Below are positions 12,330-62,450 of a stretch of DNA of 64,000 nucleotides, in pieces. A program made the translations under genes and the position numbers. Within the stretch, counting starts at the first letter, position 1; every line of letters begins with the position of its first letter. The notes beneath the pieces are model-generated. The model was not told where the DNA came from. It ran no database searches and worked only from the letters and a program-made list of their open reading frames with translations. This DNA comes from Macrostomum lignano (Eukaryota): contig NIVC01000121.1 of NCBI GenBank assembly GCA_002269645.1, forward strand, positions 310,001-374,000. The letters run 5' to 3'.

Positions 12330-13130
12330 CGTATATTTTAGCGCCAATTCAGTTCTACAGACTAGATTTTAGCGCCAATTCAGCTCTACAGACTAGATTT
12401 TAGCGCCAATTCAGCTCTACAGACTAGATTTTAGCGCCAATTCAGCTCTACAGACTAGATTTTAGCGCCAATTCAGCTCTACAGACTAGATTTTAGCGCC
12501 AATTCAGCTCTACAGACTAGATTTTAGCGCCAATTCAGCTCTACAGACTAGATTTTAGCGCCAATTCAGTTCTACAGACTAGATTTTAGCGCCAATTCAG
12601 TTCTACAGACTAGATTTTAGCGCCAATTCAGCTCTACAGACTAGATTTTAGCGCCAATTCAGCTCTACAGACTAGATTTTAGCGCCAATTCAGCTCTACA
12701 GACTAGATTTTAGCGCCAATTCAGCTCTACAGACTAGATTTTAGCGCCAATTCAGTTCTACAGACTAGATTTTAGCGCCAATTCAGCTCTGCAGATTAGA
12801 TTTTAGCGCCAATTCAGCAACACAGGCTAGATTTTAGCGCCAATTCAGCAACACAGGCTAGATTTTAGCGCCAACTCAGCAACACAGATTAGATTTTAGC
12901 GCCAATTCAGCAACACAGGCTAGATTTTAGCGCCAACTCAGCAACACAGGCTAGATTTTAGCGCCAATTCAGCAACACAGGCTAGATTTTAGCGCCAATT
13001 CAGCAACACAGACTAGATTTTAGCGCCAATTCAGCAACACAGGCTAGATTTTAGCGCCAACTCAGCAACACAGGCTAGATTTTAGCGCCAATTTAGCAAC
13101 ACAGGCTAGATTTTAGCGCCAACTCTGCTC
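12330..13130. repeat. 30-31-bp minisatellite (TAGATTTTAGCGCCAATTCAGCTCTACAGAC)n
   Basis: Tandem units; the variant with CAACACAGGC takes over after about 12810. Confidence 0.95.
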
Positions 13131-13751
13131 CGAGTTAAAAACTAGATTTTAACGCAATTTTTTAGCGCCAGTATACTTTTGAGCCATTTTGTGGGCTGGA
13201 AATTCCTTCAATTATTTACAAGAAGATTTGATGATTTTAGTAAAACTTAATTGATTCAGATTGCAACGGCCTCTCTTACTAAGCTCGTAGTCATAGCGTC
13301 TAAAAATGAGGGTGTTTCAACAATAACCTGGACTGCTAAAACTTCTATATAGGTTCTCCTTTTAAGCGAGGCCCAGAATGCAGACACGAGATTTAGAGGG
13401 AGGAGGGGGGGGGGCAATGAGAGGCGGAAAACCGGGAGTGTCACAGAAACCGACCGAGAGACGCAAGTAGGAAAGGAGAGGAGGGGATTGACGAGCGGGG
13501 GGGGGGCGGCGGCGGGTCCGGAAAAAGCGCGCGAGCAAGCGCGTGTGTAGCGCGCAAAAGTATCCATGTTATATTATTATTGCCATCACTCGTAGAATTT
13601 TCAGGCCTAAATCCAGACCCTCGGCAGACATCGAGGGCTGAGGAAAGTCGGAGGTTAAAAGGGAGGCTATCCCTACTTTTTCGTCTTTGAAAATGTGCGC
13701 ACGATTTGCTACTGACTCATACTTGCGCGTATCATGCGAAACTTGCACTTT

Positions 13752-14060
13752 TTAGTGTGTTTTGGCGCTCTGAGGTGTGTTTTGGGGCTCTGATGTGTGT
13801 TTTGGCGCTCTGAGCTGGTGTGTTTTGGCGCTCTGAGGTGTGTTTTGGGGCTCTGATGTGTGTTTTGGCGCTCTGAGCTGGTGTGTTTTGGCGCTCTGAG
13901 GTGTGTTTTGGCGCTCTAATGTGAGTTTTGGCGCTCTGAGATGTGTTTTGGCGCTCTGAGGTGCGTTTTGGCGCTCAGAGGTGTGTTTTGGCACTCTGAG
14001 GTGTGTTTTGGCGCTCTGAGATGTGTTTTGGCGCTCTGAGGTGCGGATTGGCGCTCTGGG
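13752..14060. repeat. About 20-bp minisatellite (GTGTGTTTTGGCGCTCTGAG)n
   Basis: Tandem units read directly. Confidence 0.9.
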
Positions 14061-14670
14061 GTTGCGTATTAAACGCACGAAAAAACCATAAATTTAATTG
14101 AGCTATAACTAATGATCTTTCAATACCGCTCGAATTACGAACTATACATGTAGATGTAAATCTGTTCAAAATGTAGAACAGTAAGTGACTCTGTAGTTAA
14201 TACGGTTTCAGGCTGCAAGGGCTAGACTGTAATCGATGCTTTCGAAAATCGCAATTAATGCTTTAATTGTAACGAGAGTTCTTGAGAAAACTTATTAACA
14301 GTAATATTAAAAGCCACCTGAATTTGCTACATGTTGTGCAAGTTCTGACAAAGTCCGGTTTCTATGCTATGCAAGTCGTTGACGATTTTGGCGCGAATAT
14401 ACTCAAATTCTAACTACTATACTTAACAACTTTGGCGCCAATAAACAGAAGTCTTGGCGCCATTAAATTTTGACGAAGAAAGAACTTAAAACAGTACACA
14501 ATTTTTATTAAATTTAGGAAGCACCCTTCATTATTTTATTTAAGAATTTCTGCGGCTTTTGTTAGACAATACGGCTTAAGTTTGTGCTCGAATCAACTAC
14601 TGATAAGTAGTAATGCAAGGGTTTGCCTTTGACGAGTTTAATGACTGATATCTTCATTTACCTTTAGCTT

Positions 14671-15055
14671 TAATACCCCATCTAGCACCCCTAATATCCC
14701 ATCTAGCACCCCTAATACCCCATCTAGCACCCTTAATACCCTATCTAGCACTCCTAATACCCATCTAGCACCCGAATACCCTATCTAGCAACCCTAATAC
14801 CCATCTAGCACCCCTAATACCCTATCTAGCACCCGTTATCCCCATTTAGCGTCCCTAATATCCCATCTAGCACCCTTAATACCCCATCTAGCACCCTTAA
14901 AATTCCATCTAGCACCTCTAAATACCCCATCTAGCACCTCTAAATACCCCATCTAGCACCCTTGATACCCCATCTAGCACCTTTAATACCCCATCTAGCA
15001 CCTCTAATACCCCATCTGGCACCCTTAATACTCCACTTAGCGTCCCTAATATCCC
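14671..15055. repeat. About 21-bp minisatellite (TAATACCCCATCTAGCACCCC)n
   Basis: Degenerate tandem units. Confidence 0.9.
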
Positions 15056-15519
15056 AGCATATAAAGAATTGATGTTTTAGCAAGCCATAACAATAATTTA
15101 AACCAGATACTGTAATGAAAAGACAATGATGTGGTCTACAATGATGATCAATACCAATATATTGGACAATACTCTACAGAAAACCAGAGCACAAACACAC
15201 AGGACACAAGACCGCGGGGACATTTTGAAGGCAACAATAATTATAAATTATGATAATACAAGAAAAAATATATTTTAAAAAAATATACGCTTGATAAACA
15301 AAAAGCTACTTGATTAAAAATATTTTTCGATATTTTATTACATTTTATTTGACCTTGATATACTCGTAGCAAAGTGAAACGGCATTTAAATGTGAAGGCT
15401 GGATTTTTCCATTATCAACAGCGACAAAAATTATAATAGATGGTTCAAAACTGAAGCGACAAAAAATAGGGATTCAGAGCGCAACAATAAAGCTGTAGCA
15501 GTGTGTGTTAAACTGGCAT

Positions 15520-16240
15520 TGGGGCGCCGAAATTGGGATTAGGGCGCCAATATAGGGATTAGGGATTAGGATTGGGGCGCCAATATTAGGATTGGGGCGC
15601 CAAAGTTGGGATTAGGGCGCCAATATAGGGATTAGGGATTAGGATATTAGGATTGGGGCGCCAATATTAGGATTGGGGCGCCAAAGTTAGGATTGGGGCG
15701 CAAATATTGGGATCGGGGCACCAACATTGGGATTGGGGCGCAAATATTGGGAACGGGGCACCAATATTGGGATCGGGGCGCCAATATTGGGATTGGGGCG
15801 CAAATATTGGGAACGGGGCACCAATATTGGGATCGGGGCGCCAATATTGGGATTGGGGCGCCAAAATTGGGATCGGGGCGACAAAATTGGGATCGGGGCG
15901 CCAATATTGGGATTGGGGCGCCAAAATTGGGATTGGGGCGCCAAAATTGGGATCGGGGCGACAAAATTGGGATTGGGGCGCCAAAATTGGGATTGGGGCG
16001 CCAAAATTGGGATTGGAGCGACAAAATTGGGATTGGGGCGCCAAAATTGGGATCGGGGCGCCAAAATTGGGATTGGGGCGCCAAAATTGAGATTGGGGCG
16101 CCAAAATTGGGATCGGGGCGCCAAAATTGGGATTGGGGCGCCAAAATTGAGATTGGGGCGACAAAATTAGGATTGGCGGCGCCGAAATTTGTGATTTGAG
16201 TTTGGCGCGCACAGAAAGTGGGATGAATTGGCGCCAAAAT
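15520..16240. repeat. 20-bp minisatellite (GGGATTGGGGCGCCAAAATT)n just 3' of the Argonaute stop
   Basis: Tandem units containing GGCGCC and CCAATATTGG palindromes. Confidence 0.95.
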
Positions 16241-16281
16241 TGGCTAGAGATTTTAGAACTTGAAGTCGGTTCGAGAAGTTC

Positions 16282-26881: not shown

Positions 26882-26913
<32 letters not shown>

Positions 26914-27003
26914 TTGTGGGAAACCAGGAGCTTCCTGCGAAGGGCCGCCCTGATTGCCGCCGCGACCTCGGCCACGTCCGCGAGATTTAGATTTAGCCGG
27001 CAT
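16282..27003 (-). CDS. ago: Argonaute (AGO clade, divergent, predicted slicer); exons 27003-26111, 25077-24654, 23339-22662, 21919-21341, 18697-18176, 16473-16282; 1095 aa
   Basis: N domain (LYANHF, YIYDGR); PAZ ([21 protein letters not shown]...LLPVELC); MID ([14 protein letters not shown]); PIWI ([50 protein letters not shown]). All five GT-AG junctions keep the frame (total 3288 nt). Confidence 0.93.
16605..18155. repeat. About 22-bp minisatellite (ACCTAGTCACATTCACAACACA)n filling Argonaute intron 5
   Basis: Tandem units with 17-22-bp length variants. Confidence 0.95.
18780..21014. mobile_element. Non-autonomous DNA transposon (about 2.2 kb) with 28-bp TIRs and TGTCAC/GTGACA subterminal repeats, in Argonaute intron 4
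   Basis: Left CCGTATAAAAGTGGGACTGTCACATTTT versus right AAAATGTGAGAGTCCCACTTTTATACGG (1 mismatch); inverted subterminal blocks; internal 50-52-bp tandem array at about 19690-20830. Confidence 0.85.
21017..21278. repeat. About 23-bp minisatellite (CTCATCTAGTCTCTCCTGTCTCA)n
   Basis: Tandem units; a partial unit also lies left of the TIR element (about 18755-18778). Confidence 0.85.
22295..22450. repeat. 18-bp repeat (GCCAATCAGCGAGGGGGA)x8 carrying CCAAT boxes, in Argonaute intron 3
   Basis: Read directly; begins with the palindrome CGCTGATTGGC-TG-GCCAATCAGCG. Confidence 0.85.
23350..24240. repeat. 21-bp minisatellite (GATGAGGGATAGTAGAGTGTA)n in Argonaute intron 2
   Basis: About 42 units ending about 10 bp from the acceptor. 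Confidence 0.95.
24245..24535 (+). mobile_element. tRNA-derived CORE-type SINE, copy 2
   Basis: Colinear with and highly similar to 1993-2320 (AGCCTAGTGGTTAGAG...GGTTCGATTCTC...GTGTCCTTGAGCAAGACACTTAACTCTGC...GGTTGCACATCTG). Confidence 0.85.
25361..25910. repeat. 155-bp tandem repeat x about 3.5 in Argonaute intron 1
   Basis: CAGTGGACTGG anchors at 25361, 25516, 25671 and 25827. Confidence 0.9.
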
Positions 27004-29634: not shown

Positions 29635-31299
29635 TTGTTGTTGTTGTTGTTGTTGTTAGTGCTGAGACGTTTTCCACCTAGCCCGGTACCAGCCCCAGTA
29701 CATGTACGCCAGGGCTGCATCCGGATCTTCATTTAGCCAGCTCAATTCGGACGCTCCGTACTGCCGGCGCGTTCTCTCCGTGGCCGGGCAGGAGCAGATC
29801 ACGTGTTCAACCGTGTCGGCCTCCTCTCCACAGGCCGGGCAGGTGTCTTTATCGGTCTTCCCGATCCTATGGCGATAAGCCTCCAGCTCCAGCGAATGTC
29901 CGGTGCGGAGCCTCCGGAAGCTGACACCTTCCGCCCCGACATTGAGTCCTGGGGTGCCTCGCCGTGCCACTTCTCCCGCACGTGCGGATCGTGCGCTCGT
30001 GCCTCCAGCGTTAGTAGTCGCGCTCCTCCTCCCTCGCGTGGGCATACAGCCTCCTCCTGACACTGGCCAGCACACCGGCGCCCTCCTGGGCAAGGGCGGC
30101 AGCCGCGCCCGCAGCCTCGTCCGCTGCCTCGTTGCCAGTCAGGCCGCAGTGCACGGGGACGCAGCACAAGGTCACCTTCCTACTCTGGGCACATATGTCT
30201 TCCAAGAGCTGCTGTGCCCTAAGCGCCAGCGGGTTGCGGCCTGTGCCCTTGATGGCCATGAGCCCACTCTGGCTGTCCGACACCAAAAGAGCCGATCTCT
30301 TCACTGATCATGGGCCTGTAGCCACTCCAGCCCGCGGGTAATCGCCTTGAGCTCCGCTTGCAGCGAAGAGGCCGGCAAGCCAGCCGGTTCCTTGATGATG
30401 ATGGGGGCCGCTCTCTGCTCCCGCGGCTCATCTGTCTTCCAGATCACCACTCCGCTGCCTCCTCCCAGCTCCTGCACCGATCCGTCAGAGTAGATGGTGA
30501 CGTCAGGCTTTTGACACGCCTCACTGATGCGTTCCCCGGCAAGCTGCAGATTCTCCGCATCGCTGGATTTCCTGGTGTCCGCCTCGCACACCATGATCTT
30601 GGCCTTGGCTCGCCAGTCGCTCCAGGGCGCTCTGCTACTGGCGTCGGGAATGCGGCTGATCGTGTCTAAACTGGCGGCCGCTAGGCAAGCTCCGGCCTTC
30701 GCGCGCCATCCCTTCCGAGCCAGGCACTCATTTTAGCGCCGCAGGCACTCATTTTAGCGCCGCAGGTACTCATTTTAGCGCCGCAGGTAATCATTTTAGC
30801 GCCGCAGGTACTCATTTTAGCGCCGCAGGCACTCATTTTAGCGCCGCAGGCACTCATTTTAGCGCTGCAGGCACTCATTTTACCACCGCAGGCACTCATT
30901 TTAGCGCCGCAGGTACTCATTTTAGCGCCGCAGGCACTCATTTTAGCGCCGCAGGTACTCATTTTAGCGCCGCAGGTAATCATTTTAGCGCCGCAGGTAC
31001 TCATTTTAGCGCCGCAGGCACTCATTTTAACGCCGCAGGCACTCATTTTAGCGCCGCAGGTACTCATTTTAGCGCCGCAGGCACTCATTTTAGCGCCGCA
31101 GGTAATCATTTTAGCGCCGCAGGTAATCATTTTAGCGCCGCAGGCACTCATTTTAGCGCCGCAGGCACTCATTTTAGAGTCTCTGCCTTGGTGCTTCTTC
31201 CGCCAACAGCCTCCTGGGGGAGCCGGCGGGAAGCCCGAGCCATCGATCAAGGCGGGCCCCCCAGTTAGCCCCACACAGGCCACGGAGGTCGACAAGCCC
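29635..31299 (-). mobile_element. 5'-truncated, frameshifted non-LTR retrotransposon (RNase H plus C-terminal Cys/His motif; I/Ingi/Nimb-like), interrupted by a minisatellite
   Basis: RNase H motifs TIYSDGSV, SSLQAELKAI, VSDSQS, VPVHCGLTGNEAADEAA; CPACGEEADTVEHVICSCP; (CAA)n tail directly after the stop; 10-bp TSD GCTGGCGCTG at 29625-29634 and 31300-31309; split over three frames. Confidence 0.88.
30722..31177 (-). repeat. 21-bp minisatellite (CTAAAATGAGTGCCTGCGGCG)n inserted in the LINE; left arm of an inverted pair
   Basis: About 22 units; reverse complement of the array at 31553-32045. Confidence 0.95.
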
Positions 31300-31552
31300 G
31301 CTGGCGCTGCAATTAAAAATCACTAAAATGCCGTCAGATAAAAAATTAAAGAGACAGCGCCAAGAGGAACTGAAGGAGGCAGGCAAGAGATAAGTGGCGT
31401 AGGCAAGGGGGGATAAGGGGATGTATTCCCCTGTGGGGTTTTGGGGGTCTGGTGTGGGGGTATGAAAAAAATTAGTAGGTAAAAAAGAGAAGCAGAGTTA
31501 ACAAATGGTCTAATCCAAAAGATACTGATCTAAAAGAATAGCTATATAATAT

Positions 31553-32045
31553 GGACGGCGCTAAAATGAGTGCCTTCGGCGCTAAAATGAGTGCCTGCGG
31601 CGCTAAAATGAGTACCTGCGGCGCTAAAATGAGTACCTGCGGCGCTAAAATGAGTGCCTGCGGCGCTAAAATGAGTACCTGCGGCGCTAAAATGAGTGCC
31701 TGCGGTGGTAAAATGAGTGCCTGCAGCGCTAAAATGAGTGCCTGCGGCGCTAAAATGAGTGTCTGCGGCGCTAAAATGAGTGCCTGCGGCGCTAAAATGA
31801 GTGCCCGCAGCGCTAAAATGAGTGCCTGCGGCGCTAAAATGAATGCCCGCAGCGCTAAAATGAGTGTCTGCGGCGCTAAAATGAATGCCCGCAGCGCTAA
31901 AATGAGTGCCTGCGGCGCTAAAATGAATGCCCGCAGCGCTAAAATGAGTGTCTGCGGCGCTAAAATGAATGCCCGCAGCGCTAAAATGAGTGCCTGCGGC
32001 GCTAAAATGAGTGCCTGCGGCGCTAAAATGAATGCCTGCGGCGCC
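31553..32045 (+). repeat. 21-bp minisatellite (GGCGCTAAAATGAGTGCCTGC)n; right arm of the inverted pair
   Basis: About 23 units read directly. Confidence 0.95.
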
Positions 32046-33504
32046 AAAACTTTGTAGTACTCATACTTGTAGAACTATTAGGCAGGACAGTGGATGGTAC
32101 TTGTAATTTTTATTGAAGTTACCTTACGCAATACTAATAAGCAGTAGTCTCACCAGTTGTATACCCCCGTGAAAAGTTCTGACTACGCTTCTGCAGGGTA
32201 TCCAGAAAATGAACTGATTGGTCTTTCCCTTTGCAATTTTCATTCATTCGGGATATTTACTAAATAAATTGATAGTGCAGTACAGTTGCTCAATGTTTGA
32301 ATCAGTTGAAAATTCGAGAATTTTCAGACTTTTGGCCACTTTCAACACGGAATTGAATATTGGCCTTGAGGTTGGCTCATGTTCTTGAATTCCGTGTGCC
32401 TGCGTTGCTTTGCTCAGGCCAAGACAGAACCCAAGACAGAATTGATTTAATTACATTAGGTACCAGTCCCATAAAGCATTTCACACTGTACCAAAAAGCT
32501 CCTCACAATTAGGATAATCTACACAAATGTGCATGAAATCACAATGTAAACAAAAATTTGACATGACACAAAGTTTGATAAAATGAAAAAATAGAATATC
32601 AAGATTTTATTTTTGCTATTAAATTTATTATTAGTTGCTTCCGCAATTTTCAGTTTCCGGGGCAACAGGAAACAAAGCAAACAAAAATTATAAAGAAGCA
32701 TTGCGCGACAGTTATAAACCTGATTAAGCGGCCATTGAACAAGAAAAGGATATTTTGTTTTGACGATCGCAGTCTCGAGACCGCACTACTGGCAGTAGGA
32801 CGACGTATATTTAACGCGTAAAAGTTATGAGAACTTATTGAATGCCCTTCAAAAAATAATTTAGTAAGAGTTCTTAAAAGCCACTGTTTTTTTGAGAATA
32901 AAAGTTTTGAATTTTTTCTCTTTTGGGACTTTCCAAACGCTAGAAGACCTAGCTTGAAGACCTAGATTGCACAAACACACAAGCAAAGCTAATATAATGT
33001 TGAAGAGCAAACAAATAAAACTGTCAACATAACCATGTCGCAAGATTTATTAATTGATTGCACAATAACAAATCAGCTGTATTGATTCTGTCAATAGATC
33101 TAAAGTATATTATGAAAGAATGGGAGAGATTCACTAAACAAAAAAACAGGATAATTTTGTGTGTGCTCTTTTGAAAGATTTATTAAAAATACGCCTGCAA
33201 AAACACGGATGAACAAGAAAAGCCGTAGATTTCAGAAAGCTTTTATTACTAAACAAATTAAATAATAACTGAAAAAATAGCTATAATATGTGACGAGTAA
33301 AGATACCAGTAAATTTTGCGCGGAAAAACAGCTGGTCCACAAGTGCACTGTAGTAAAACAAAAAGTTATTAAAAAAAATTTATCTAACCAAAAAATTTTA
33401 AACTACAAACTAACAAAAGATTTGAATAAACTGTAGGCCTGAATATTGCACAAACTTCTATCACACTTTTCGCTTGAAACCTATTTGAGTCCGGAAACTT
33501 GTGT

Positions 33505-36142: not shown

Positions 36143-44854
<8,712 letters not shown>

Positions 44855-45975: not shown

Positions 45976-48938
45976 ATGCACCCAATCAGCATGTTCCGCA
46001 AGCCTCAACCAGCTGCTAGCTCTGCCCAGAGTGCCAGCTCAAAGCCTACTACTGGATCCATTGCATCTCCCCAGCAGCAACAATATAGCTGCGAATTTGG
46101 CTCTACCAAATACTATGCCTACTGTGGTTTTGGTGGCATTGTCAGCTGCGGTCTGACCCACACTGCTGTTGTGCCACTTGACCTGGTCAAGTGCCGCATG
46201 CAGGTTGACCCTGTCAAGTATCCGGGCATTATTCCTGGCTTCAAGGTGACACTGGCTGAGGATGGCATGCGAGGCTTGGCTAAAGGTTGGGCACCAACTT
46301 TTATTGGCTACTCGATGCAGGTAAGCATTCTGTTGGTTTCTTGTTTGGTTGTGGCGTGGAATGATTGACTTTCAGCACTGCTTTAATCTAGTACCTAGTT
46401 GATGCAGTACTACTAAATGCAGCACCTCCTAGGTCTAGCACCCCTAGGTCTAGCACTGTAGTAACACACAGATCTAGCACTCATAGATCTAGCACCCATA
46501 GATCTAGCACCCATAGATCTAGCACCCCTAGATCTAGAACCTATAGATCTAGCACCCATAGATCTAGCACCCATAGATCTAGCACCCCTAGATCTAGAAC
46601 CTATAGATCTAGCACCCATAGATCTAGCACCCATAGATCTAGCACCCCTAGATCTAGAACCTATAGATCTAGCACCCATAGATCTAGCACCCATAGATCT
46701 AGCACCCATAGATCTAGCACCCCTAGATCTAGAACCTATAGATCTAGCACCCATAGATCTAGCACCCATAGATCTAGCACCCATAGATCTAGCACCCCTA
46801 GATCTAGAACCTATAGATCTAGCACCCATAGATCTAGCACCCATAGATCTAGCACCCATAGATCTAGCACCAATAGATTTAGCACCAATAGATCTAGCAC
46901 TCATAGATCTAGCACCCATAGATCTAGCACCCATAGATCTAGCACCCCTAGATCTAGCACTCATAGATCTAGCACCCATAGATCCAGCACCCATTGATCT
47001 AGCACCCATAGATCTAGCACCCACAGATCTAGCACTCATAGATCTAGCACCCATAGATCTAGCACTCATAGATCTAGCACCCATAGATCTAGCGCCCATT
47101 GGTCTAGCACCCATAGATCTAGCGCCCATTGATCTAGCACCCATAGATCTAGCACTCATAGATCTAGCACCCGTAGATCTAGCACCCATAGATCTATGCA
47201 CTTATCTCTATACTTGAAATTTCCCATATTTTCCCAACCTAAATCATCTATCAATCTACATGCACACGCAACGCTATTACCAATAAATCAGGGCCTCGGG
47301 AAATTCGGATTCTACGAAATCTTCAAAAACGTGTACACCAGCCTGATGGGCCCGGAGAATGCCTTCCTCTATCGAACTTCACTGTACTTGGCCGCCAGCG
47401 CCAGCGCCGAGTTCTTCGCCGACATGCTCCTGGCCCCGATGGAAGCCACCAAAGTGCGCATTCAAACCAAAGCCGGATTTGCTAACAATCTACGCGAAGC
47501 CTTCCCCAAGATGCTGGCAGCCGAAGGCGCCATGACATTCTACAAAGGCCTACCGCCTCTATGGGGCCGCCAGATTCCCTACACTATGATGAAGTTTGCC
47601 TGCTTCGAGCGCACAGTGGAAGCACTGTACAAATACGTGGTGCCCAAGCCGAGAGAGCAGTGCAATAAAGCTGAACAGCTCACTGTAACATTTGTAGCTG
47701 GTTACATTGCCGGCGTGTTTTGCGCTATCGTGTCCCACCCGGCTGATACTATGGTGTCCAAGCTCAATCAGATGCCGGACGCTGGACTGGTTGGTGTGGC
47801 TAAGGCTCTCGGATGGAAAGGTGATGAGTTTCTCTGTTGTTAGCGGGAATTTTCGCAAGTTCGCAAATCCCATTGGAATACCGGATTCTCTAAAGGCGCC
47901 AGATCTTCTAGGGGCGCCAGATCCTCTAAGAGCGCCAGATCCTCTAGTGGCGCCAGATCCTCTAAAGGCGCCAGATCCTCTAGGGGTGCTAGATCCTCTA
48001 GGGATGCCAGATCCTCTAGTGGGGCCAGATCCTCTAGGGGTGCTAGATCCTCTAGGGGTGCTAGATCCTCTAGGGGTGCTAGATCCTCTAGGGGTGCTAG
48101 ATCCTCTAGGGGTGCTAGATCCTCTAGGGGTGCTAGATCCTCTAGGGGTGCTAGATCCTCTAGGGGTGCTAGATCCTCTAGGGGTGCTAGATCCTCTAGG
48201 GATGCCAGATCCTCTAGTGGGGCCAGATCCTCTAGGGGTGCTAGATCCTCTAGGGGTGCTAGATCCTCTAGGGGTGCTAGATCCTCTAGGGGTGCTAGAT
48301 CCTCTAGGGGTGCTAGATCCTCTAGGGGTGCTAGATCCTCTAGGGGTGCTAGATCCTCTAGGGGTGCTAGATCCTCTAGGGATGCCAGATCCTCTAGTGG
48401 GGCCAGATCCTCTAGGGGTGCTAGATCCTCTAGGGGTGCTAGATCCTCTAGGGGTGCTAGATCCTCTAGGGGTGCTAGATCCTCTAGGGGTGCTAGATCC
48501 TCTAGGGGTGCTAGATCCTCTAGGGGTGCTAGATCCTCTAGGGGTGCTAGATCCTCTAGGGATGCCAGATCCTCTAGGGGCGCCAGATCCTCTAAGGGCG
48601 CCAGATCCTCTAGGGGCGCCAGATCCTCTAGGGGCGCCAGATCCTCTGGGAGCGCCAGATCCTCTGGGAGCGCCAGATCAGGGGTCGGCGTCATTAATGA
48701 GCATAGCTGCATGACTGTAATTAACCCAGCTGTCAACTCACTCCATAATCCCTTCCTCTCACCCCACACAGCCATGTGGAAGGGCCTGGGCGCTCGCATC
48801 ATCATGATAGGCACCTTGACGGCTCTGCAGTGGTTCATCTACGACACTGTGAAGGTGGTACTGCAGATGCCGCGACCCCCGCCGCCAAGCATGCCGGAGA
48901 GTCTGCGTAAGAAGCTGGAAGCCAAGCAGAGCGCTTGA
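45976..48938 (+). CDS. slc25a3: Mitochondrial phosphate carrier; exons 45976-46320, 47292-47820, 48772-48938; about 346 aa (start could be 45991)
   Basis: CGLTHTAVVPLDLVKCRMQVD, GWAPTFIGYSMQ|GLGKFGFYE, PMEATKVRIQT, WGRQIPYTMMKF, SHPADTMVSKLN, ARIIMIGTLTALQWFIYD; splice phases 0 and 1 are consistent. Confidence 0.95.
46430..47196. repeat. 15-bp minisatellite (GATCTAGCACCCATA)n in SLC25A3 intron 1
   Basis: About 50 units. Confidence 0.95.
47895..48680. repeat. 18-bp minisatellite (GGGGTGCTAGATCCTCTA)n in SLC25A3 intron 2
   Basis: About 43 units; terminal units carry GGCGCCAG. Confidence 0.95.
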
Positions 48939-51285: not shown

Positions 51286-51338
51286 TTTCTCATTGAGCAA
51301 CAGCAGTTGGTGCTACATCATCTGCATGAACAGAATAG

Positions 51339-54300
51339 ATGCTGCTGGAACTGTGCCTCAGCCTCATCTTTCTGTGGCTTCTGTGGCGCCTCACCTACGC
51401 CAGAGATCGCGGTTCAAAACCGATGCCTCACCTACCTGAAGTTCCATTCCTGGGCCACCTGCCATTTCTAGCCGTGAAGCATCTGCGCGATCCCAAACGC
51501 CGTCAGTACATGGACATGGTGACGATGCAGCACCATCCAGTCTTCAGTAACATTGTCGGTCTACAGAGATTTGTCATCATCAGCGGCTACGAGGCCATCA
51601 AGTCGGCATTCTTCGATTACGGTGACGCATTCTCCGGCCGGCCAAGGAATCCGTTCTACCTGCTGGTGTCCGGCGGCAAAGGCGTTATTCTGTCCGAGGG
51701 TAGCACCTGGAAGGAGCAGCGACGTTTTGCACTGCGGGTGCTGCGCGATCTGGGGCTGGGCAAGTCGCGAATGGAGGAGGTGATCTCGGCCGAGGCGGAG
51801 GAACTTGTGGCTAATTTTGCTGCTCTGAATGGCCGGCCGGTCAATACTAAGGATTTGTTGTCGAAGGTTAGGGTTGTTGTTGTTTTATTGAACTGTGTTG
51901 GGCAGTTTTATGACGCTTCATTTTCTTTGGCGCCGAAAGAATTTTTGTGTTGTTAACAATTTAAAAAATTAGCAATACTGGGAAATGCTTGCACGAGTTA
52001 ATACGTTTTACTTAAAACAGAAATACTAAAAGCATGAAAGCACCAAAATACAACACAATCAACAACGGACAATCGCAGTTAAATAACACCGACAACAACC
52101 GTAGCAACAATAACATTATTAACAAAAAACAACAACACCAACAACAATAACAACAACAACAGCAATAGCAACAAAAATTTAAACACCAACAAATCAAGCA
52201 ACAACAACACCAGCATCTCCAACAACAACAACACCAGCATCTCCAACAACAACAACACCAGCATCTCCAACAACAACAACACCAGCATCTCCAACAACAA
52301 CAACACCAGCATCTCCAACAACAACAACACCAGCATCTCCAACATCAACAACACCAGCATCTCCAACATCAAAAACACCAGCATCTCCAACAACAACAAC
52401 ACCAGCATCTCCAACAACAACAACACCAGCATCTCCAACATCAACAACACCAGCATCTCCAACAACAACAACAACACCAGCATCTCCAACAACAACAACA
52501 CCAGCATCTCCAACAACAACAACACCAGCATCTCCAACAACAACAACACCAGCATCTCCAACAACAACAACACCAGCATCTCCAACAACAACAACACCAG
52601 CATCTCCAACAACAACAACACCAGCATCTCCAACATCAACAACACCAGCATCTCCAACATCAAAAACACCAGCATCTCCAACAACAACAACACCAGCATC
52701 TCCAACAACAACAACACCAGCATCTCCAACATCAACAACACCAGCATCTCCAACAACAACAACAACACCAGCATCTCCAACAACAACAACACCAACATCT
52801 CCAACAACAACACCAGCATCTCCAACAACAACAACACCAACATCTCCAACAACAACACCAGCATCTCCAACAACAACAACACCAGCATCTCCAACATCAA
52901 CAACACCAACATCTCCAACAACAACAACACCAACATCTCCAACAACAACAACACCAGAATATCCAACAGCAACAACAGCAACATCTCCAACAACAAGAAC
53001 AACACCAAGAACAACACCTGCAAAAATAACGAAAACAACACCACTATTAAAAACTATATCAACAACAGTATTAACAACAACAAAAACTATAACTAAAACA
53101 ACAATAAAAGCAACAAGGACAACAAAATTAACAAATAACAACAACACGAACCCGCCAGGCCGTGGCAAACGTTATCGGCGGCCTGGTGTTCAGCGAACGA
53201 TCCGGCTACGAAGATCCGGACTTTAAGGCCACCATCGATCACGTGACCAACGTCACCCAGGTGGGCAGTCCGGCACAGTTTCTCACCATATTCTACCCGT
53301 TCCTGTGCCAACCATGGATTGTGAAACTGCTGCCCGGGCTCAATCGGTCGGTGATATCCAGAGACTGGCTCAGTGAGGCCTGTCAGGCTCGCGTCAATCG
53401 AATCAGACAGAAATTTAACGAAGAATTCGGAGAAGACATTGTCGACAATGCATCGGCTGCTGAGCCGGTCAACTTTGTTGAGGCCTATCTGAGGGAGCAG
53501 CGGCGCCGGCTGGCTGCGGGAGAGTCCACGCTGGGATCCTTTGATGACGAGCAGCTGGTGCAGGTGCGATGGCGCTGGAGGTCTGAGGGGAGGGGCAGCA
53601 GGCACTGAAGGATCTGAGGGGAGGGGCAGCAGGCACTGAAGGAGCTGAGGGGAGGGGCAGCAGGCACTGAAGGAGCTGAGGGGAGGGGCAGCAGGCACTG
53701 AAGTATCTGAGGGGAGGGGCAGCAGGCACTGAAGGATCTGAGGGGAGGGGCAGCAGGCACTGAAGGATCTGAGGGGAGGGGCAGCAGGCACTGAAGGGTC
53801 TGAGGGGAGGGGCAGCAGGCACTGATGGATCTGAGGGGAGGGACAGCAGGCACTGAAGGATCTGAGGGGAGGGGCAGCAGCCACTGAAGGATCTGAGGGG
53901 AGGGGCAGCAGGCACTGATGGATCTGAGTTGAGTGGTCAGTAAAGCATGGAGATCGCACTCTCAAACCCAACAGACGGTGCTGGACTTGTACATCGCTGG
54001 GTCGGACACAACGACCTCCACTCTTGGCTGGCTGCTGCTGTACAGCGCTCTGCACCCGGACGAGCAGCGCCAGTGCCAGGCCGAGCTGGCCACCGAGCTA
54101 AGTGAGGCTCCCGTCAGACTGGATGATCGCCGACGTTTGCACCGAGTGCTGGCGTTCATCGACGAAGGCATGCGAATGAGCAGCATTTTGGTGCACAATG
54201 TTGATAGGCAAGTTGCTTTATTGAACATCTGTGCGGTTTTTCTCATTCAAGTGCGCAACTAGTGCTACTTATAGTAAGCAGATAAGCTGTAGTGGCTTGT

Positions 54301-55676
54301 ACCTGATTTTTATATTAATATCCTCTGACACTTTCTTAGTGTCTCCTGGCACCTTTTTGTGACCCCCTTGACCCCCTTGACACCTACTTTAGTCCCCCTG
54401 ACACCTGTTTTAGTGACCCCCCTTTGACACCTATTTAGTGACCCCCATCTGACACCTATTTTAGTGATCTCTTGACACCTATTTTAGTGACCTCTTGACG
54501 CCTATTTTAGTGACCCCCTGACACCTATTTTAGTGACCCCCTTTGACACCTATTTTAGTGACCCCCTGACACCTATTTTAGTGGCCCCCTTTGACACCTA
54601 TTTTAGTGACCCCCCTTTGACACCTATTTTAGTGCCCCTGACACCTGTTTTAGCGACCCCTCCCCCCTTGAAACCTATTTTAGTGACCCCCTCTGACACC
54701 TATTTTAGTGACTCCCCCTCTGAATTCTGTTTTAGTGACCCCCTCTGACACCTAGTGACCTCTATTTGACACCTATTTTGTGACCCCCATCTGAAAACTA
54801 TTTAGTGACCCCCATCTGGACACCTATTTAGTGAACCACTCTGACACCTTTTTAGTGACCCCCTCTGACACCTATTTAGTGACCCCTCTGACACCTATTT
54901 AGTGACCCCCCTCTGACACTTATTTTAGTGACTCCCCCTCTGAATTCTGTTTTAGTGACCCCCTCTGACACCTAGTGACCTCCATCTGACACCTATTTTG
55001 TGACCTCCATCTGACACCTATTTAGTGACCCCCATCTGAAACCTATTTAGTGATCCCCTCTGACACCTATTTAGTGACCCCCTCTGCCACCTATTTAGTG
55101 ACCCCCTCTGACACCTATTTAGTGACCCCTCTGCCACCTATTTAGTGACCCCCTCTGACACCTATTTAGTGACCCCCTCTGCCACCTATTTAGTGACCCC
55201 CTCTGACACCTATTTAGTGACCCCCTCTGACACCTATTTAGTGACCTCCTCTAACAGAAATTGAATAAACATTTGTTAAACATTGCCGCATTGTCAGGCG
55301 GGTGCTCAGAGACACTGAGTTCCTCGGCTACCTGATCCCAGCCTCCGCCATCGTGTTCATCAATCTCTACGGTCATCATCGGGATCCGAGATATTTTCCC
55401 AATCCGTCCGAGTTTAAGCCAAGCAGATTTCTGGACTCGGACGGGCGATACCAGGCCAGCCAATACCTGATCCCATTCGGCCTGGGCCGCAGGTCCTGCC
55501 TAGGCGAGTCCCTGGCTAAAGCTGAGGTGTTCCTATTGTTTGCCAGCTTGCTGCAAAAGTTCAATATTGAACTGACGGATGACTGCTTGAAGCTTGGCGA
55601 AGACCTGCTGGTTGGTACGGACGGTATTGTGCGGGCGCCAGAGCCGCATCAACTCCGGCTGGTGCCTAGAGACTAG
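51339..55676 (+). CDS. Cytochrome P450, CYP2 clan; exons 51339-51866, 53159-53563, 53975-54207, 55298-55676; 514 aa
   Basis: N-terminal TM anchor; FSGRP; WKEQRRF (C-helix); AGSDTT (I-helix); EGMR (ExxR); FKPSRF (PERF); PFGLGRRSCLG (heme Cys). Intron 3 requires a GC donor (AG|GCAAGT). Confidence 0.93.
52090..53150. repeat. AAC-rich 24-bp minisatellite (AACAACAACAACACCAGCATCTCC)n in P450 intron 1
   Basis: Core array about 52205-52990, with degenerate AAC-rich flanks up to the acceptor. Confidence 0.92.
53580..53927. repeat. 31-bp minisatellite (GAGGGGAGGGGCAGCAGGCACTGAAGGATCT)n filling P450 intron 2
   Basis: About 11 units. Confidence 0.93.
54330..55250 (+). repeat. About 23-bp minisatellite (CTGACACCTATTTAGTGACCCC)n in P450 intron 3; left arm of an inverted pair
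   Basis: Tandem units with C-run variation. Confidence 0.93.
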
Positions 55677-55841
55677 AGAGACTTTAGAGTAGCTGTTCTT
55701 TTTCAACGGTTAACTTATTAACTACTGCTAGTAGCATCATGACAATGATTTTTTGTTTTTTTGTATTTTTGATATTCGCCCATTGATTGAAGCGGTATTG
55801 TCTCTGATTAAGTGCGTAAATCGGGTCTAACATTGTTTTCA

Positions 55842-55847
55842 AATAAA
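55842..55847 (+). promoter_or_regulatory. Probable polyadenylation signal of the P450
   Basis: AATAAA 166 bp after the stop. Confidence 0.5.
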
Positions 55848-55869
55848 TTTGAAATAAGAGTCAGTTGCT

Positions 55870-56385
55870 TACTAAAATAGGTGTCAAAGGGGGGTCATTA
55901 AAATAGGTGTCAGAGGGGTCATTAAAATATATGTCAGAGGGGGTCACTAAAGTAGGTGTCAGACGGGGAGTCACTAAAATAGGTGTCAGAGGGGGTCACT
56001 AAAATAGGTGTCAGAGGGGGTCACTAAAATAGGTGTCAGAGGGGGTCACTAAAATAGGTGTCAGAGGGGGGTCACTTAATAGGTGTCATAGGGGGTAACT
56101 AAAATAGGCCGGTGTCAGAAGGGGGTCACTTAAATAGGTGTCAGAGGGGGTAACTAAAATAGGCCGGTGTCAGAAGGGGGTCACTTAAATAGGTGTCAGA
56201 GGGGGGTCACTTAAATAGGTGTCAGGGGGGTCACTAAAATAGGTGTCAGAGGGGGGGTCACTAAAATAGGTGTCAAGGAGGGGGTCACTTAAATAGGTGT
56301 CAGGGGGGTCACTAAAATAGGTGTCAGAGGGGGGGGTCACTAAAATAGGTGTCAAGGAGGGGGTCGCTAAAATAGGTGTGGGGGA
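55870..56385 (-). repeat. Same unit in inverted orientation (GGGGTCACTAAAATAGGTGTCAG)n, 3' of the P450
   Basis: Exact reverse complement of units at about 54500-54620. Confidence 0.93.
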
Positions 56386-57591: not shown

Positions 57592-58470
57592 CTGTAATTA
57601 CAGTTTTGGCGCATTCACTACCGTCTTAGCGCCTTTATTACAGTTTTTGCGTTTTCATTACAGTTTTAGCGCCTTTAATTACAATTTTGGTGCCTGTATA
57701 AATAAAGTTTTACCGCCTTTAGTACAGTTCCAGCGCCTTCATTACAGTTTTAGCGCCTTCATTACAGTTTTAGCGCCTTTATTACAGTTTTAGCGCCTTT
57801 ATTACAGTTTTAGCGCCTTTATTACAGTTTTAGCGCCTTTATTACAGTTTTAGCGCCTTTATTACAGTTTTAGCGCCTTTATTACAGTTCCAGCGCCTTC
57901 ATTACAGTTCCAGCGCCTTCATTACAGTTTTAGCGCCTTCATTACAGTTTTAGCGCCTTTATTACAGTTTTAGCGCCTTTATTACAGTTTTAGCGCCTTT
58001 ATTACAGTTTTAGCGCCTTTATTACAGTTTTAGCGCCTTTATTACAGTTTTAGCGCCTTTATTACAGTTCCAGCGCCTTCATTACAGTTTTAGCGCCTTT
58101 ATTACAGTTTTAGCGCCTTTATTACAGTTTTAGCGCCTTTATTACAGTTTTAGCGCCTTTATTACAGTTTTAGCGCCTTTTTTTACAGTTTTAGCACCTT
58201 TATTACAGTTTTAGCACCTTTATTACAGTTTTAGCACCTTTATTACAGTTTTAGCACCTTTATTACAGTTTTAGCGCCTTTATTACAGTTTTAGCGCCTT
58301 TATTACAGTTTTAGCGCCTTTATTACAGTTTTAGCGCCTTTATTACAGTTTTAGCACCTTTATTACAGTTTTAGCACCTTTATTACAGTTTTAGCACCTT
58401 TATTACAGTTTTAGCACCTTTATTACAGTTTTAGCACCTTTATTACAGTATTAGCGCTTTTATTACAGTT
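57592..58470. repeat. 20-bp minisatellite (ATTACAGTTTTAGCGCCTTT)n
   Basis: Degenerate start followed by about 37 homogeneous units. Confidence 0.95.
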
Positions 58471-59069
58471 TTAACGCCATCGCCATTGCCAATTTCGGCT
58501 ATATCTTAATACTAAAGATGAAAATCATATTGTAGGTATTTTTAATATCTAATTCTAAAATAGTTTCTACGAGCGTACAATACACTATTTCAGTTATCAG
58601 CAGTCCCAGTAGACCCTGATGCTTTTGGCAAACCGAAGCCTCTCTACTACTAAGTCAATTGCTAAGTTGATGCACCTGTGCCTTGTTTTTACAAGGTCGA
58701 CTATGCAAGATTGATAGATTAGGTGCAAATAGGAAGGCCAGACAAATATTGTACAGATTTAATAGCTAGCTAAAGCTGTTGTTAATCCAATAGGAGAAAT
58801 GAAAGTAAGAGGTGAGAGAATTAAATGAATGCCAAAAGCTGAAATGGCAGTGCAGATAAAGTTTTGTGCAACCCTCCAATGCTTGTTTTCCTTTGCATTC
58901 CCTTCCATTGCTAGAGGGAAGCTGTTTGGGAAATCAAAAGACTTGATGTAAAATGCTTTCAATATCTGCAAGCCTTAATTAAGAGGGGATGAAGAAAAGG
59001 CGGCTAAGTGAGGAACTGGGAGTTGGGAAGGGAGCAATGATTGGCAATTAGCGAGAGGGAATATGCGGA

Positions 59070-60135
59070 GCGGAGATGGGGAAGGTTAAAGGCGAGAGGA
59101 GAAAGACAAGGGCGAAAGAGACAAGGGCGAGAGGAGAAAGACAAGGGCGAAAGAGACAAGGGCGAAAGGAGAAAGACAAGGGCGAAAGAGACAAGGGCGA
59201 AAGGAGAAAGACAAGGGCGAAAGTGACAAGAGCGAGAGGTGAGAGACAAGAGCGAGAGGTGAGAGACAAGAGCGAGAGGTGAGAGACAAGAGCGAGAGGT
59301 GAGAGACAAGAGCGAGAGGTGAGAGACAAGAGCGAGAGGTGAGAGACAAGAGCGAGAGGTGAGAGACAAGAGCGAGAGGAGAGAGACAAGAGCGAGAGGA
59401 GAGAGACAAGGGCGAGAGGTGAGAGACAAAGGCGAGAGGTGAGAGACAAGGGCGAGAGATGAGAGACAAGAGCGAGAGGTGAGAGACAAGAGCGAGAGGA
59501 GAGAGACAAGGGCGAGAGAGGAGAGAAAAGGGCGAGAGGAGAGAGACAAGGGCGAGAGGACAGAGACAAGGGCGAGAGGACAGAGACAAGGGCGAGAGGA
59601 GAGAGACAAAGGCAAGAGGAGAGAAAAGGGCGAGAGGAGAGAGACTAGGGCGAGAGGACAGAGACAAGGGCGAAAGAGACAAGGGCGAGAGGAGAGAGAC
59701 AAGGGCGAGAGACAAGGGCGAGAGACAAGGGCGAGAGAGACAAGGGCGAGAGGAGAGACAAGGGCGAGAGGAGAGAGACAAGGGCGAGAGGACAGAGACA
59801 AGGGCGAGAGGAGAGAGACAAGGGCGAGAGGAGAGAGACAGGGCGAGAGGAGAGAGACAAGGGCGAGAGGAGAGAGACAAGGGCGAGAGGAGAGAGACAA
59901 GGGCGAGAGGAGAGAGACAAGGGCGAGAGGAGAGAGACAAAGGCAAGAGGAGAGAAAAGGGCGAGAGGAGAGGCATAAAGGCGAGAGACAAGGGCGAGAG
60001 ACAAGGGCGAGAGAGACAAGGGCGAGAGGAGAGACAAGGGCGAGAGGAGAGAGACAAGGGCGAGAGGAGAGAGACAAAGGCAAGAGGAGAGAAAAGGGCG
60101 AGAGGAGAGGCATAAAGGCGAGAGACAAGGGCGAA
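59070..60135. repeat. Purine-rich about 20-22-bp minisatellite (GAGAGACAAGGGCGAGAG)n
   Basis: Read directly. Confidence 0.9.
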
Positions 60136-60674
60136 AGGAACATGAAAGTGACGCAATCACCGAGATAACGAGAGTCAGTAACCGTATCAGGTACTAGAAA
60201 AGACAATAAAACGAAGGGTAGAAGCGGACAGCGATTAAAACAAAAAAATCCTTTTTTACTGCACCGACAGGCCGGGTCTATAATAAAACGTGGCCTGTTG
60301 GCAGTAATAGTACAATTTCAAGATCGATGGCAAGCATATGATTTATACACAAGTAGATAGTTACAGAGGAGACGCAACACATCAGATTAGAAATATGTCA
60401 ATGGTATGAGTGCTGGGCAGGCGCTGTTTGCTAGCAGCTGTTACAGGCTGACTGATGTCAACCACAGTTAGACATGCAGGATGCGGTACCTCCAGACCCC
60501 CAACTCGTTTTTTATAGAGACCATGAAAGCAGTGGTTTGGAATTGGGCTTTAAATTGTGCGAATCATGGATGCCTAAAACCTAGATGTCTGGATTGAAAG
60601 TTTCTTGAGGAGCGTTTGTTGAAAAGTGGAAGCAAGCAATCAAAAAGTACCGTCCGCTTGCTTTGAAAGCAGTA

Positions 60675-62450
60675 TGCTCTGAGCTGCTCTGAACTACTCT
60701 CTGAGCTACTCTGAGCTACTCTCTGAGCTACTCTCTGAGCTACTCTCTGAGCTACTCTCTGAGCTACTCTGAGCTACTCTCTGAGCTACTCTCTGAGCTA
60801 CTCTGAGCTACTCTCTGAGCTACTCTCTGAGCTACTCTGAGCTACTCTCTGAGCTACTATCTGAGCTACTCTGAGCTACTCTCTGAGCTACTCTGAGCTA
60901 CTCTCTGAGCTACTCTCTGAGCTACTCTGAGCTACTCTCTGAGCTACTCTGAGCTGCTCTGAGCTACTATGAGCTACTCTCTGAGCTACTCTGAGCTACT
61001 CTCTGAGCTACTCTCTGAGCTACTCTCTGAGCTACTCTCTGAGCTACTCTCTGAGCTACTCTCTCAGCTACTCTGAGCTACTCTCTGAGCTACTCTGAGC
61101 TACTCTCTGAGCTACTCTCTGAGCTACTCTCTGAGCTACTCTCTGAGCTACTCTCTGAGCTACTCTGATCTACTCTCTGAGCTACTCGCAGTTACTCTGA
61201 GCTACTCTGAGCTACTCTGGGCTACTCTGAGCTACTCTGAGCTACTCTGAGCTACTCTGAGCTACTCTGAACTACTCTGGGCTACTCTGAGATACTCTGA
61301 GCTATTCTGAACTGAATTGTAGAATAAAAACACACAAAAGTATTAGTTTTCCCAGATTCAATTGCTAGCAATCCTTGGCAAAGTCATCCCTTCTGATTGG
61401 AAGTTGAGGCGCCAGACTGAAAAAATCAGGGGCATGGGGAACGCAGCGAAGCCGGCTGGCCTTGCTGTCCTTCTTTTGCCTTTCCGAACTTGTTTAAATT
61501 AACATAGTATTTTCGATTTTTTATAGAGATCTCGTTTGGAATTCTCTGGCTTTGCGTGACGCGAATGCAGAATATATGCTGCAGAATTTACAGTTTCTTC
61601 ATGTGTCTTAAAGTTAGAGAAAAAATCATGTGGGATTTTCTAAGTTTGTATTTTAATACTGCCAGCTTCTTTGTATTCTAACAAGGAGCCCTGGCGGCCC
61701 TTGTTCTGGCGCCCCTGTTGCTGGCGCCTCTGTTGCTGGCGCCCCTGGTGCTGGCGCCCCTGGTGCTAAAGCCCCTGGTGCTGGCGCCCCTGGTGCTGGC
61801 GCCCCTGGTGCTGGCGCCCCTGGTGCTGGCGCCCCTGGTGCTGGCGCCCCTGGTGCTGGCGCCCCTGGTGCTGGCGCCCCTGGTGCTGGCGCCCCTGGTG
61901 CTGGCGCCCCTGGTGCTGGCGCCCCTGGTGCTGGCGCCCCTGGTGCTGGCGCCCCTGGTGCTGGCGCCCCTGGTGCTGGCGCCCCTGGTGCTGGCGCCCC
62001 TGGTGCTAAAGCCCCTGGTGCTAAAGCCCCTGGTGCTAAAGCCCCTGGTGCTAAAGCCCCTGGTGCTAAAGCCCCTGGTGCTAAAGCCCCTGGTGCTAAA
62101 GCCCCTGGTGCTAGCGCCCCTGGTGCTGGCGCCCCTGGTGCTAAAGCCCCTGGTGCTGGCGCCCCTGGTGCTGGCGCCTTTGGTGCTGGCGCCCCTGGTG
62201 CTGGCGCCCCTGGTGCTGGCGCCCCTGGTGCTGGCGCCCCTGGTGCTGGCGCCCCTGGTGCTGGCGCCCCTGGTGCTGGCGCCCCTGGTGCTGGCGCCCC
62301 TGGTGCTGGCGCCCCTGGTGCTGGCGCCCCTGGTGCTGGCGCCCCTGGTGCTGGCGCCCCTGGTGCTGGCGCCCCTGGTGCTGGCGCCCCTGGTGCTGGC
62401 GCCCCTGGTGCTGGCGCCCCTGGTGCTGGCGCCCCCTGGTGCTGGCGCCC
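60675..62450. repeat. Composite block, copy A: (CTGAGCTACTCT)n + about 380 bp unique + (CTGGCGCCCCTGGTG)n
   Basis: Arrays at 60675-61312 and 61690-62450. Confidence 0.92.

Follow-up and report, generated by a model that had tools for sequence, protein, structure and literature searches.

The human hypervariable (Jeffreys-type) minisatellites are loci that have in common a G-rich core of ~10-15 bp (GGGCAGGAXG) and that have been proposed to be by-products of recombination hotspots, and among mobile elements tandem repeats are carried by Helitrons/Helentrons (as arrays), by tandem-repeat MITEs and by the Drosophila Foldback elements (with arms of 10/20/31-bp repeats). In the nematode genus Meloidogyne, satellites carry a 19-bp CenH3-associated box (PMC8097292) or CENP-B box-like motifs at their monomer junctions (PMC3694981), and both have been proposed to promote the rearrangement and spread of arrays by illegitimate recombination or by a transposition-like process (PMC8097292, PMC3694981). 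Minisatellites and satellites that share a core (i.e. the human core and the nematode boxes) are therefore already known. Here we report that a 64-kb stretch of the Macrostomum lignano genome (contig NIVC01000121.1, ~310001-374000, assembly GCA_002269645.1; hereafter the window, with positions counted from its first base) harbors ~41 minisatellite arrays (42.6% of its bases), found with Tandem Repeats Finder (TRF) and falling into 31 unit families, and that a core is shared among these families beyond chance: an asymmetric motif of ~10-12 nt, yTTT(G/A)GCGCC(CC), with the palindrome GGCGCC/GCGC at its centre. This core, placed in intron-filling arrays and accompanied by evidence of its decay between homeologous copies, appears to be undescribed (literature searches returned no earlier description of it).

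Like the Jeffreys-type loci, the M. lignano arrays are dispersed and combine differing unit lengths (within ~10-60 bp) and differing remainders with one short G/C-rich core; unlike them, they possess a core that is a CpG-centred palindrome joined to a T-run (and not GGGCAGGAXG), and they occupy a gene-dense region, where they lie in introns and in short spacers, instead of subtelomeres. With the Meloidogyne satellites they have in common that a short motif is conserved among otherwise divergent monomers, and in M. lignano a palindromic junction pivots on it; in contrast to the 19-bp box (fully conserved, and with bound chromatin shown), the M. lignano core decays freely and is seen in sequence only, and its monomers, at 15-31 bp, are far shorter. 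As a model for regeneration and stem cells, M. lignano can be made transgenic, and its genome is unusually rich in simple and tandem repeats (15% of the assembly, PMC5730564); a common founding core, if true, would offer a testable handle on the birth and spread of minisatellites, a question open since the human core was described.

The inventory of unit families revealed GCGCC in 9/31, as compared to 0.91 expected from composition shuffles (0/2000 reached 9) and 1.07 expected from same-length random pieces of the non-array DNA of the window (0/3000 reached 9), which amounts to a ~9-fold enrichment. A preliminary description of the stretch had noted the core in units that are otherwise unrelated and had named a motif frequency equal to background as its refutation; among the units of the window the motif stood above its background frequency, and the observation was confirmed. 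For GGCGCC, 4 families were observed (0.14-0.24 expected), and TTTTRGCGCC occurred 98 times (0.2 expected per window), all of them falling within four loci or at their edges (12335, 15510, 30721/31556 and 57597; arrays are named as in the list below). Furthermore, the best 11-mer common to the families (≤2 mismatches, corrected for motif discovery) was TTTTGGCGCCC, present in 7 families (null maximum 6 in 300 trials), and when CpG-decayed forms were counted (e.g. TAGCACC, GGTGCC) the pattern T-R-G-(CG/TG/CA)-C-Y was found in 12/31 families (0.62 expected). CpG is itself rarer than expected in the units (13 families vs 21), and in 9/13 CpG-containing units it lies within GCGC. That the enrichment is a chance or compositional artefact, as the mild over-representation of GGCGCC in non-array DNA (15 observed vs 4.6 under an order-1 and 9.3 under an order-3 model) could be taken to suggest, is extremely improbable given the nulls drawn from that same DNA and the recurrence of TTTTRGCGCC at four separate loci. 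About 6 solo cores lie outside the arrays (by rough estimate close to chance level), and the motif is thus almost confined to arrays. The units and coordinates given in the preliminary description all proved correct; the arrays with an intact, decayed or possible core are the following:

646..1424, plus strand: 15-bp array CAGCTAGCACTCCCT, a possible decayed member (TAGCACT) and the weakest assignment
2966..4040, minus strand: 21-bp array, ATAATGGCGCCCCTTACACCG on the minus strand, with a GGCGCC core
5068..5701, plus strand: 22-bp array, CTGTGCGCC(C/T)TA, GCGCC present without the T-R prefix
12335..13175 (about), plus strand: 31-bp array, core ATTTTAGCGCCAATT / TTTTAGCGCC
13755..14062, plus strand: 20-bp array, core GTTTTGGCGCTCTG / TTTTGGCGCT, which matches the E2F consensus TTTSSCGC
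14387..14470, no strand assigned: three solo cores, TTTTGGCGCG at 14387, CTTTGGCGCCAA at 14432 and CTTGGCGCCA at 14454
14671..15056, plus strand: 21-bp array CCCATCTAGCACCCCTAATA with a CpG-decayed core; minority units ATTTAGCGTCCC
15510..16245, minus strand: 20-bp array, TTTTGGCGCCCCAATCCCAA on the minus strand, with TTTTGGCGCC; a terminal solo TTGGCGCCAAAA at 16230
30721..31177, plus strand: 21-bp array CAGGCACTCATTTTAGCGCCG, its left end adjoining the 5' truncation point of a long interspersed nuclear element (LINE) fragment
31556..32049, minus strand: inverted copy of the 21-bp array at 30721, 378 bp from its partner
38190..39960, plus strand: unit GAGAGTGGCGCCCTGTGTTTTATTGGGGG of 29/30 bp, the array lying in an intron of the ERK gene
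46470..47201, plus strand: 15-bp array AGATCTAGCACCCAT with a decayed core, in a phosphate-carrier intron
47881..48690 (named 47901), minus strand: 18-bp array, interior GGGGTGCTAGATCC, edge GG(G/A)GCGCCAGATCC, GGCGCC at the ends
53563..53928 (named 53571), no strand assigned: 31-bp array in P450 intron 2, from the 5' splice site
57597..58478, plus strand: 20-bp array ATTACAGTTTTAGCGCCTTT, 44 copies, first unit TTTTGGCGC
61691..62450, plus strand: 15-bp array CTGGCGCCCCTGGTG, GGCGCC, 50 copies
63771..64000, plus strand: second copy of the 61691 array, within the segmental duplication 60746-61920 / 62812-64000

Anchoring the families on GCGC with optimised orientation yielded the asymmetric motif ~t-t-t-(g/a)-GCGC-c-c-c, in which the GCGC flanks hold 6.31 bits of information (3.67±0.48 in shuffles, null maximum 5.42), meaning that the motif reaches past GCGC. 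Exact sub-cores recur among the arrays, i.e. TTTTAGCGCC in 12335, 30721 and 57597, GGGGCGCCA (on the opposite strand TGGCGCCCC) in 2966, 15510 and 61691, GGGCGCCA being found in 38190 as well, and ATCTAGCACCC, which is the CpG-decayed version of the core, in 14671, 46470 and 47901. Once the 7-nt core was removed, 0/78 pairs of unit remainders aligned at P≤0.01 and 3 at P≤0.05 (approximately chance), in agreement with the preliminary description, which held the remainders to be unrelated and the units to differ in length. Clans related by descent beyond the core, drawn from alignments by eye, failed this core-removed test and were rejected; the impression of such clans would seem to come solely from a few bases by which the core is extended. 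Within the 12335 array the core is identical in 25/25 copies, with positions 18-21 and 26 variable, and the edge units have it too. The three solo cores at 14387-14470 lie at intervals of 45 and 22 bp, are followed in common by NA(A/T)TA(A/T)A, include the 10-bp palindrome TTGGCGCCAA, and look like either a decayed array or a nascent one with a 22-bp unit. Intact-core arrays lie for the most part between genes or 3' of them (2966, 5068, 12335, 13755, 15510 and 30721/31556; probably also 57597 and 61691, where no gene was found), and those in the introns of mapped genes mostly either lack CpG or carry a decayed core. As separate observations, telomere-like TTAGGG/GGGATT runs lie inside the 15510 array at 15540-15580, and several units have GGGG directly 5' of CGCC, which gives one strand a G-quadruplex potential.

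We favor, at a rough probability of 0.4, the view that these arrays constitute a core-sharing minisatellite superfamily, in which template switching or break repair pivoting on the GC-rich palindrome would have let fragments with the core found new arrays that evolved neutrally afterwards, the founding step being the part that we infer. Short stretches of an existing array that include the core would be copied to neighboring sites (occasionally to remote ones) when replication switches template or a break is repaired, and the switch would anneal or pivot at the core, which is GC-rich and self-complementary. The new unit would be made of the core and of the adjoining local sequence, which would account for the differing unit lengths and remainders, and would be amplified by slippage or unequal exchange, at which stage an intact core would no longer be needed. 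On this assumption, the core would be present at the birth of an array and best kept in its old edge units, and in the interior it would decay by CpG transitions, the decayed variants spreading through local duplication. Arrays of one family do lie in pairs, inverted or direct, at distances of 0.4-1.5 kb (30721/31556, 46470/47901, 54369/55871 and 33508/34723), of which 46470/47901 is inverted around the carrier exon 47196-47843 and 54369/55871 around the last P450 exon (55291-55673); such close pairs, some of them across exons, indicate that array material was copied locally. Moreover, the 2966 array contains 26-bp palindromes CACCGATAATGGCGCCATTATCGGTG (CACCGATAATGG(C/T)GCCATTATCGGTG) at 3216, 3716, 3790 and 3997, three of them perfect with a centre that is exactly GGCGCC and the one at 3790 with its centre decayed to GGTGCC, and palindromes centred on GGCGCC would be the expected signature of a strand switch pivoting on the core. 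The predicted single-strand DNA folds of core-bearing arrays are also more stable than those of the others (-10.2 vs -4.3 kcal per 100 nt, with P=0.007 in a Mann-Whitney test; z -1.5 vs +0.1). Fork stalling and template switching or microhomology-mediated break-induced replication (FoSTeS/MMBIR), together with microhomology duplication, would explain units composed of motif and local sequence, copies lying nearby in inverted orientation and junctions that are perfect palindromes; to our knowledge, processes of this type do not prefer one specific 10-nt motif, and the specificity found in M. lignano is the part that they leave unexplained.

The fate of the core after the founding of an array was followed within arrays and between copies of the region. 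Within arrays its CpG is the chief variable site, being decayed to TG in 13/38 copies of 2966, carrying T at the C of CpG in 23/45 copies of 38190 (the consensus of which thus reads GGTGCC, with 14 intact RGCGCY hexamers left), and reading CA (AGCACC) in 9/44 copies of 57597, in blocks. Edge units keep CG where the interiors have TG or CA, as in 47901 (GGCGCC or AGCGCC at both ends, GGGGTGCT inside), in 53571 (GGCGCT in the first unit, GGCACT inside), and in the opening unit of 57597 and the closing unit of 31556 (TTTTGGCGC(C) vs TTTTAGCGCC in the interior; in the latter TTTTGGCGCC takes the place of TTTTAGCGCC), and these edge units are the least homogenised or oldest of their arrays. We compared the window with two further copies of the region, L001 (NIVC01000288.1) and L005 (NIVC01002897.1), which are 95-99% identical in unique DNA and are homeologues or haplotypes of the window, fitting what has been reported on this M. 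lignano line, namely redundancy and a hidden polyploidy (PMC5730564, PMC7013459). Every array between 46 and 61 kb was found at the same site in both, with differing copy number and core state: the 47901 orthologues carry GGGGTGCT (window), GGGCGCC (L001) and GGGGTGCC (L005), and those of 57597 carry AGCGCC (window, L005) or mostly AGCACC (L001), with the variants in contiguous blocks, so that the comparison shows base by base how one repeat variant replaces another within an array. Copy number varies between allelic/homeologous copies as in Jeffreys-type loci, with 50 copies of 61691 in the window vs 7-12 in L005, 49 of 46470 vs 10 in the compared copy, and 52 of a 12-mer array (CTCTGAGCTACT) vs 422 in L001. 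The GGGCGCCCCTGTCTCTTGGT family, which occupies paralogous spacers of P450 clusters on other contigs (3-78 copies), has TTTTTTGGCGCCC as its edge unit there, i.e. the same extended core in an otherwise unrelated family, and its two largest arrays (49-78 copies) carry the mutated core GGGCGTCCC, which implies that an intact core is not required for continued expansion. Taken together, the differing core states of homeologues and the expansion of mutated-core arrays point to a lack of purifying selection on the core in established arrays, and the behavior of the core resembles that of an element which founds an array and afterwards decays, not that of a maintained binding site. Where the preliminary description had offered a seed or a protein-binding site, it is hence the seed that gains support (the core is kept in edge units and decays inside), and the binding site that is weakened by the loss in homeologues and by the expansion of mutated-core arrays.

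Several observations weigh against a founding by template switching on the core. In the TTTTAGCGCC families the self-complementary part comprises just the 4-bp GCGC, the four palindromes of the 2966 array may stem from one event multiplied by higher-order duplication, and no seeding event was caught, all compared arrays being present in the three homeologous copies. Furthermore, 6-bp palindromes in general are not enriched among the units (7 vs 5.65 expected), on which ground we rejected the idea that any palindrome suffices; hairpin stability therefore fails to explain this motif, and motif specificity without a general enrichment of palindromes points to sequence-specific recognition or to descent. 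Finally, among 13 families from other M. lignano contigs the core was present in 1, so that the enrichment is shown for this region and not genome-wide; if it is regional only, the finding reduces to a local family of related arrays.

With respect to sequence-specific recognition, the core could be the binding site of a protein (E2F/DP, a CENP-B-like transposase-derived protein or another) that either makes the arrays functional or causes the breaks or stalled forks by which arrays are founded and rearranged, an explanation that we consider unlikely. An enrichment specific to one asymmetric motif and not to palindromes generally argues for it, as do the Meloidogyne precedents of divergent tandem repeats with a conserved box (PMC8097292, PMC3694981); the loss of the core in one homeologue and its retention in another (no sign of constraint) and the mutated core of the largest paralogous arrays argue against it. 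As for E2F/DP, the consensus of which is TTTSSCGC (palindromic form TTTGGCGCCAAA), agreement was found for TTTTGGCGCC and TTTGGCGCCAA, for the TTTTGGCGC(C/T) that two arrays carry and for the three solo sites (14387-14462). Only 2/9 core-bearing families (13755 and 15510) fit the consensus, which is matched neither by the families with TTTTAGCGCC, ATGGCGCC, CTGGCGCC and GTGGCGCC nor by those with A/C/G-TGGCGCC (2966, 61691, 38190). Unlike E2F/DP sites, the cores lie in long arrays in introns and in 3' or intergenic spacers, apparently not in promoters, and are not conserved between homeologous copies (47901, 57597). Upstream of the start codons placed in the window (Argonaute 27003, ERK ~44854, mitochondrial phosphate carrier (PiC) ~45949, P450 51339), no listed RGCGCY site lies within a few hundred bp, the true starts being uncertain given that many M. 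lignano transcripts are trans-spliced (PMC5730564). An E2F reading of the core, as offered earlier, is thus not supported. A distinctly less probable variant is that TTTT(G/A)GCGCC acts in cis as a minisatellite-founding signal at which a sequence-specific factor (a domesticated transposase/nickase or a winged-helix protein of the E2F kind) would nick DNA or stall forks and so give rise to new arrays over and over throughout the M. lignano genome; if true, it would help to explain the ~15% of simple/tandem repeats genome-wide and the array-filled introns. Still more doubtful, in our judgement, is that the core would be the target of a meiotic recombination initiator (a zinc finger of the PRDM9 kind) and the arrays by-products of its hotspots: the analogy with the G-rich core of human hypervariable minisatellites, the fast turnover of copy number between haplotype/homeologous copies and the erosion of the core in established arrays (which would resemble the self-destruction of hotspots) speak in its favor, but this erosion consists of CpG transitions spreading in blocks, for which no conversion bias is necessary.

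Descent within the region, by which one or more ancestral arrays would have broken up, decayed and re-expanded (leaving the core as the part still alike), is somewhat unlikely, although it ranks above recognition by a protein. Core-bearing arrays do cluster (four of them and the three solo sites in 12.3-16.2 kb, and the neighbors 2966/5068, 46470/47901 and 57597/61691), their extended cores link stepwise (the solo TTTGGCGCCAATAAAC and the TTTAGCGCCAATTCAG of 12335 match in 13/16 positions, ATCTAGCACCC(C)TA is common to 14671, 46470 and 47901, and a unit similar to 57597 is found in the left flank of 12335), and the scarcity of the core on other contigs is in line with such a history. However, the remainders are unalignable and yet the best-kept segment holds a fast-mutating CpG, which neutral decay should erase first; moreover, loci separated by 18-27 kb, with genes and unrelated arrays between them, carry the identical 10-mer, and the extended core is also present on another contig. 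The preliminary view that the core reflects something other than simple common descent is consequently supported by the unalignable remainders, against which stand the stepwise extended cores and the regional clustering.

The arrays were also compared with repeats of transposon and RNA-gene origin. Like Foldback-type elements, they comprise dispersed short arrays, inverted pairs a few hundred bp apart and 20/21/31-bp units with one 10-mer; unlike transposon-borne arrays, they lack conserved flanks, termini and target-site duplications, and in 2/3 inverted pairs the loop is the exon of a functional gene. All-against-all comparison of array flanks (200-400 bp) returned only physical overlaps, the flanks of related arrays on other contigs likewise sharing nothing, and no terminal inverted repeats or target-site duplications were found at the arrays; a transposon origin has no support, and arrays as the cargo of one transposon family were rejected on these grounds. 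A Foldback element spanning 30721-32049 was dismissed as well (no target-site duplication, arms and outer ends in different repeat phase), as was an origin of the 30721 array from a LINE 3' tail, since the fragment at 29633-30732 ends in (ACA)n and the array adjoins its 5' truncation point, not its tail. This fragment (minus strand) is a 5'-truncated, frame-shifted non-LTR (long terminal repeat) retrotransposon with an RNase H domain, a C-terminal CCHC knuckle and the (ACA)n tail, the truncation point of which touches the 30721 array; a protein search with it returned no M. lignano proteins among its matches. Derivation of the GGGCGCCCCTGTCTCTTGGT array from the P450 heme-loop exon was likewise rejected, the apparent fusion at locus L012 being a microhomology deletion, and at locus L011 an intact heme-loop exon is present 45 bp downstream of the array. 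No tRNA genes and no Rfam hits that would indicate a tRNA or structured-RNA origin of the arrays were found, and a resemblance of the 8-mer TGGCGCCC to the complement of the tRNA-Lys 3' end was dropped for want of any match past 8 nt. The core-less family at 54369-55256 / 55871-56379 has relatives at L006 (2801-4771) and L007 (2644-4990), linked via CAGAGGGGGTCAC and with no flanks in common, which indicates that the dispersal of related arrays is not restricted to the GCGCC core.

The window is gene-dense, and its introns and short spacers are filled by arrays (nearly every one with its own; in each of the three P450 introns one array makes up most of the length), in agreement with the long exons, introns of ~1.1-1.4 kb and 15% of simple/tandem repeats published for M. 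lignano (PMC5730564, PMC9469890). Over positions 41351-64000 the window is 100% identical to locus L004, which comes from contig NIVC01000121.1. Five genes were found:

5784-7862 and 9942-10364, minus strand: BicC-like KH/SAM gene
Exons from 27003 down to 16285, minus strand: Argonaute gene
Exons between ~44854 and 37590, minus strand: ERK-type MAP kinase
45949-46365 and 47196-47843, plus strand: mitochondrial phosphate carrier
51339-55673, plus strand: cytochrome P450 gene, its spliced model 100% identical to BOX15_Mlig000805g3

Three arrays (23354-24238, 36437-37561 and 53563-53928) start 0-30 bp from splice sites, that named 53571 exactly at the 5' splice site, and the 23354 array stops 15 bp short of an exon, so that splice signals and arrays are nearly contiguous. 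P450 intron 3 shows an apparent GC-AG splice site (AG|GCAAGT at 54209-54220), and the spliced model that is 100% identical to the annotated protein makes use of it. Inverted-repeat flanks favor exon circularisation or skipping in other animals, and hairpin pairing in pre-mRNA of the inverted arrays at 46470-48665 and 54369-56379 would enclose single exons.

In the Argonaute gene, a CTG/CAG-type repeat within the first coding exon (26551-26916) codes for an extended N-terminal tract, rich in Q/P, behind an RGG stretch; a search with an Argonaute exon retrieved nothing close. One of its introns harbors an array with a 50-bp unit and TGTCAC/GTGACA inverted motifs (19652-20931; GTCACAGCGGTGAC hairpin), which has the strongest predicted single-strand structure of the window (z -5.7), and at 25361-25910, again within an Argonaute intron, 3.6 copies of a 155-bp unit are present, in which a C-rich block accompanies CCAAT-like boxes (GGCCAATG, GAACCAATTAGC). 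Three copies, 84-90% identical (2035-2276, 24291-24523 and 41390-41468), represent a dispersed element that has a head resembling a tRNA, with TAGTGGTTAGAGC as A box and GGTTCGATTC as B box, and is probably a tRNA-derived short interspersed nuclear element of ~290 bp. The tandem segmental duplication 60746-61920 / 62812-64000 (98% identical) includes two arrays (CTCTGAGCTACT and CTGGCGCCCCTGGTG). Between the divergently transcribed ERK and carrier genes the sequence is very AT-rich (44000-46000, 25% G+C), and at this stretch the homeologue L001 carries a 1.28-kb insertion (2463-3745).

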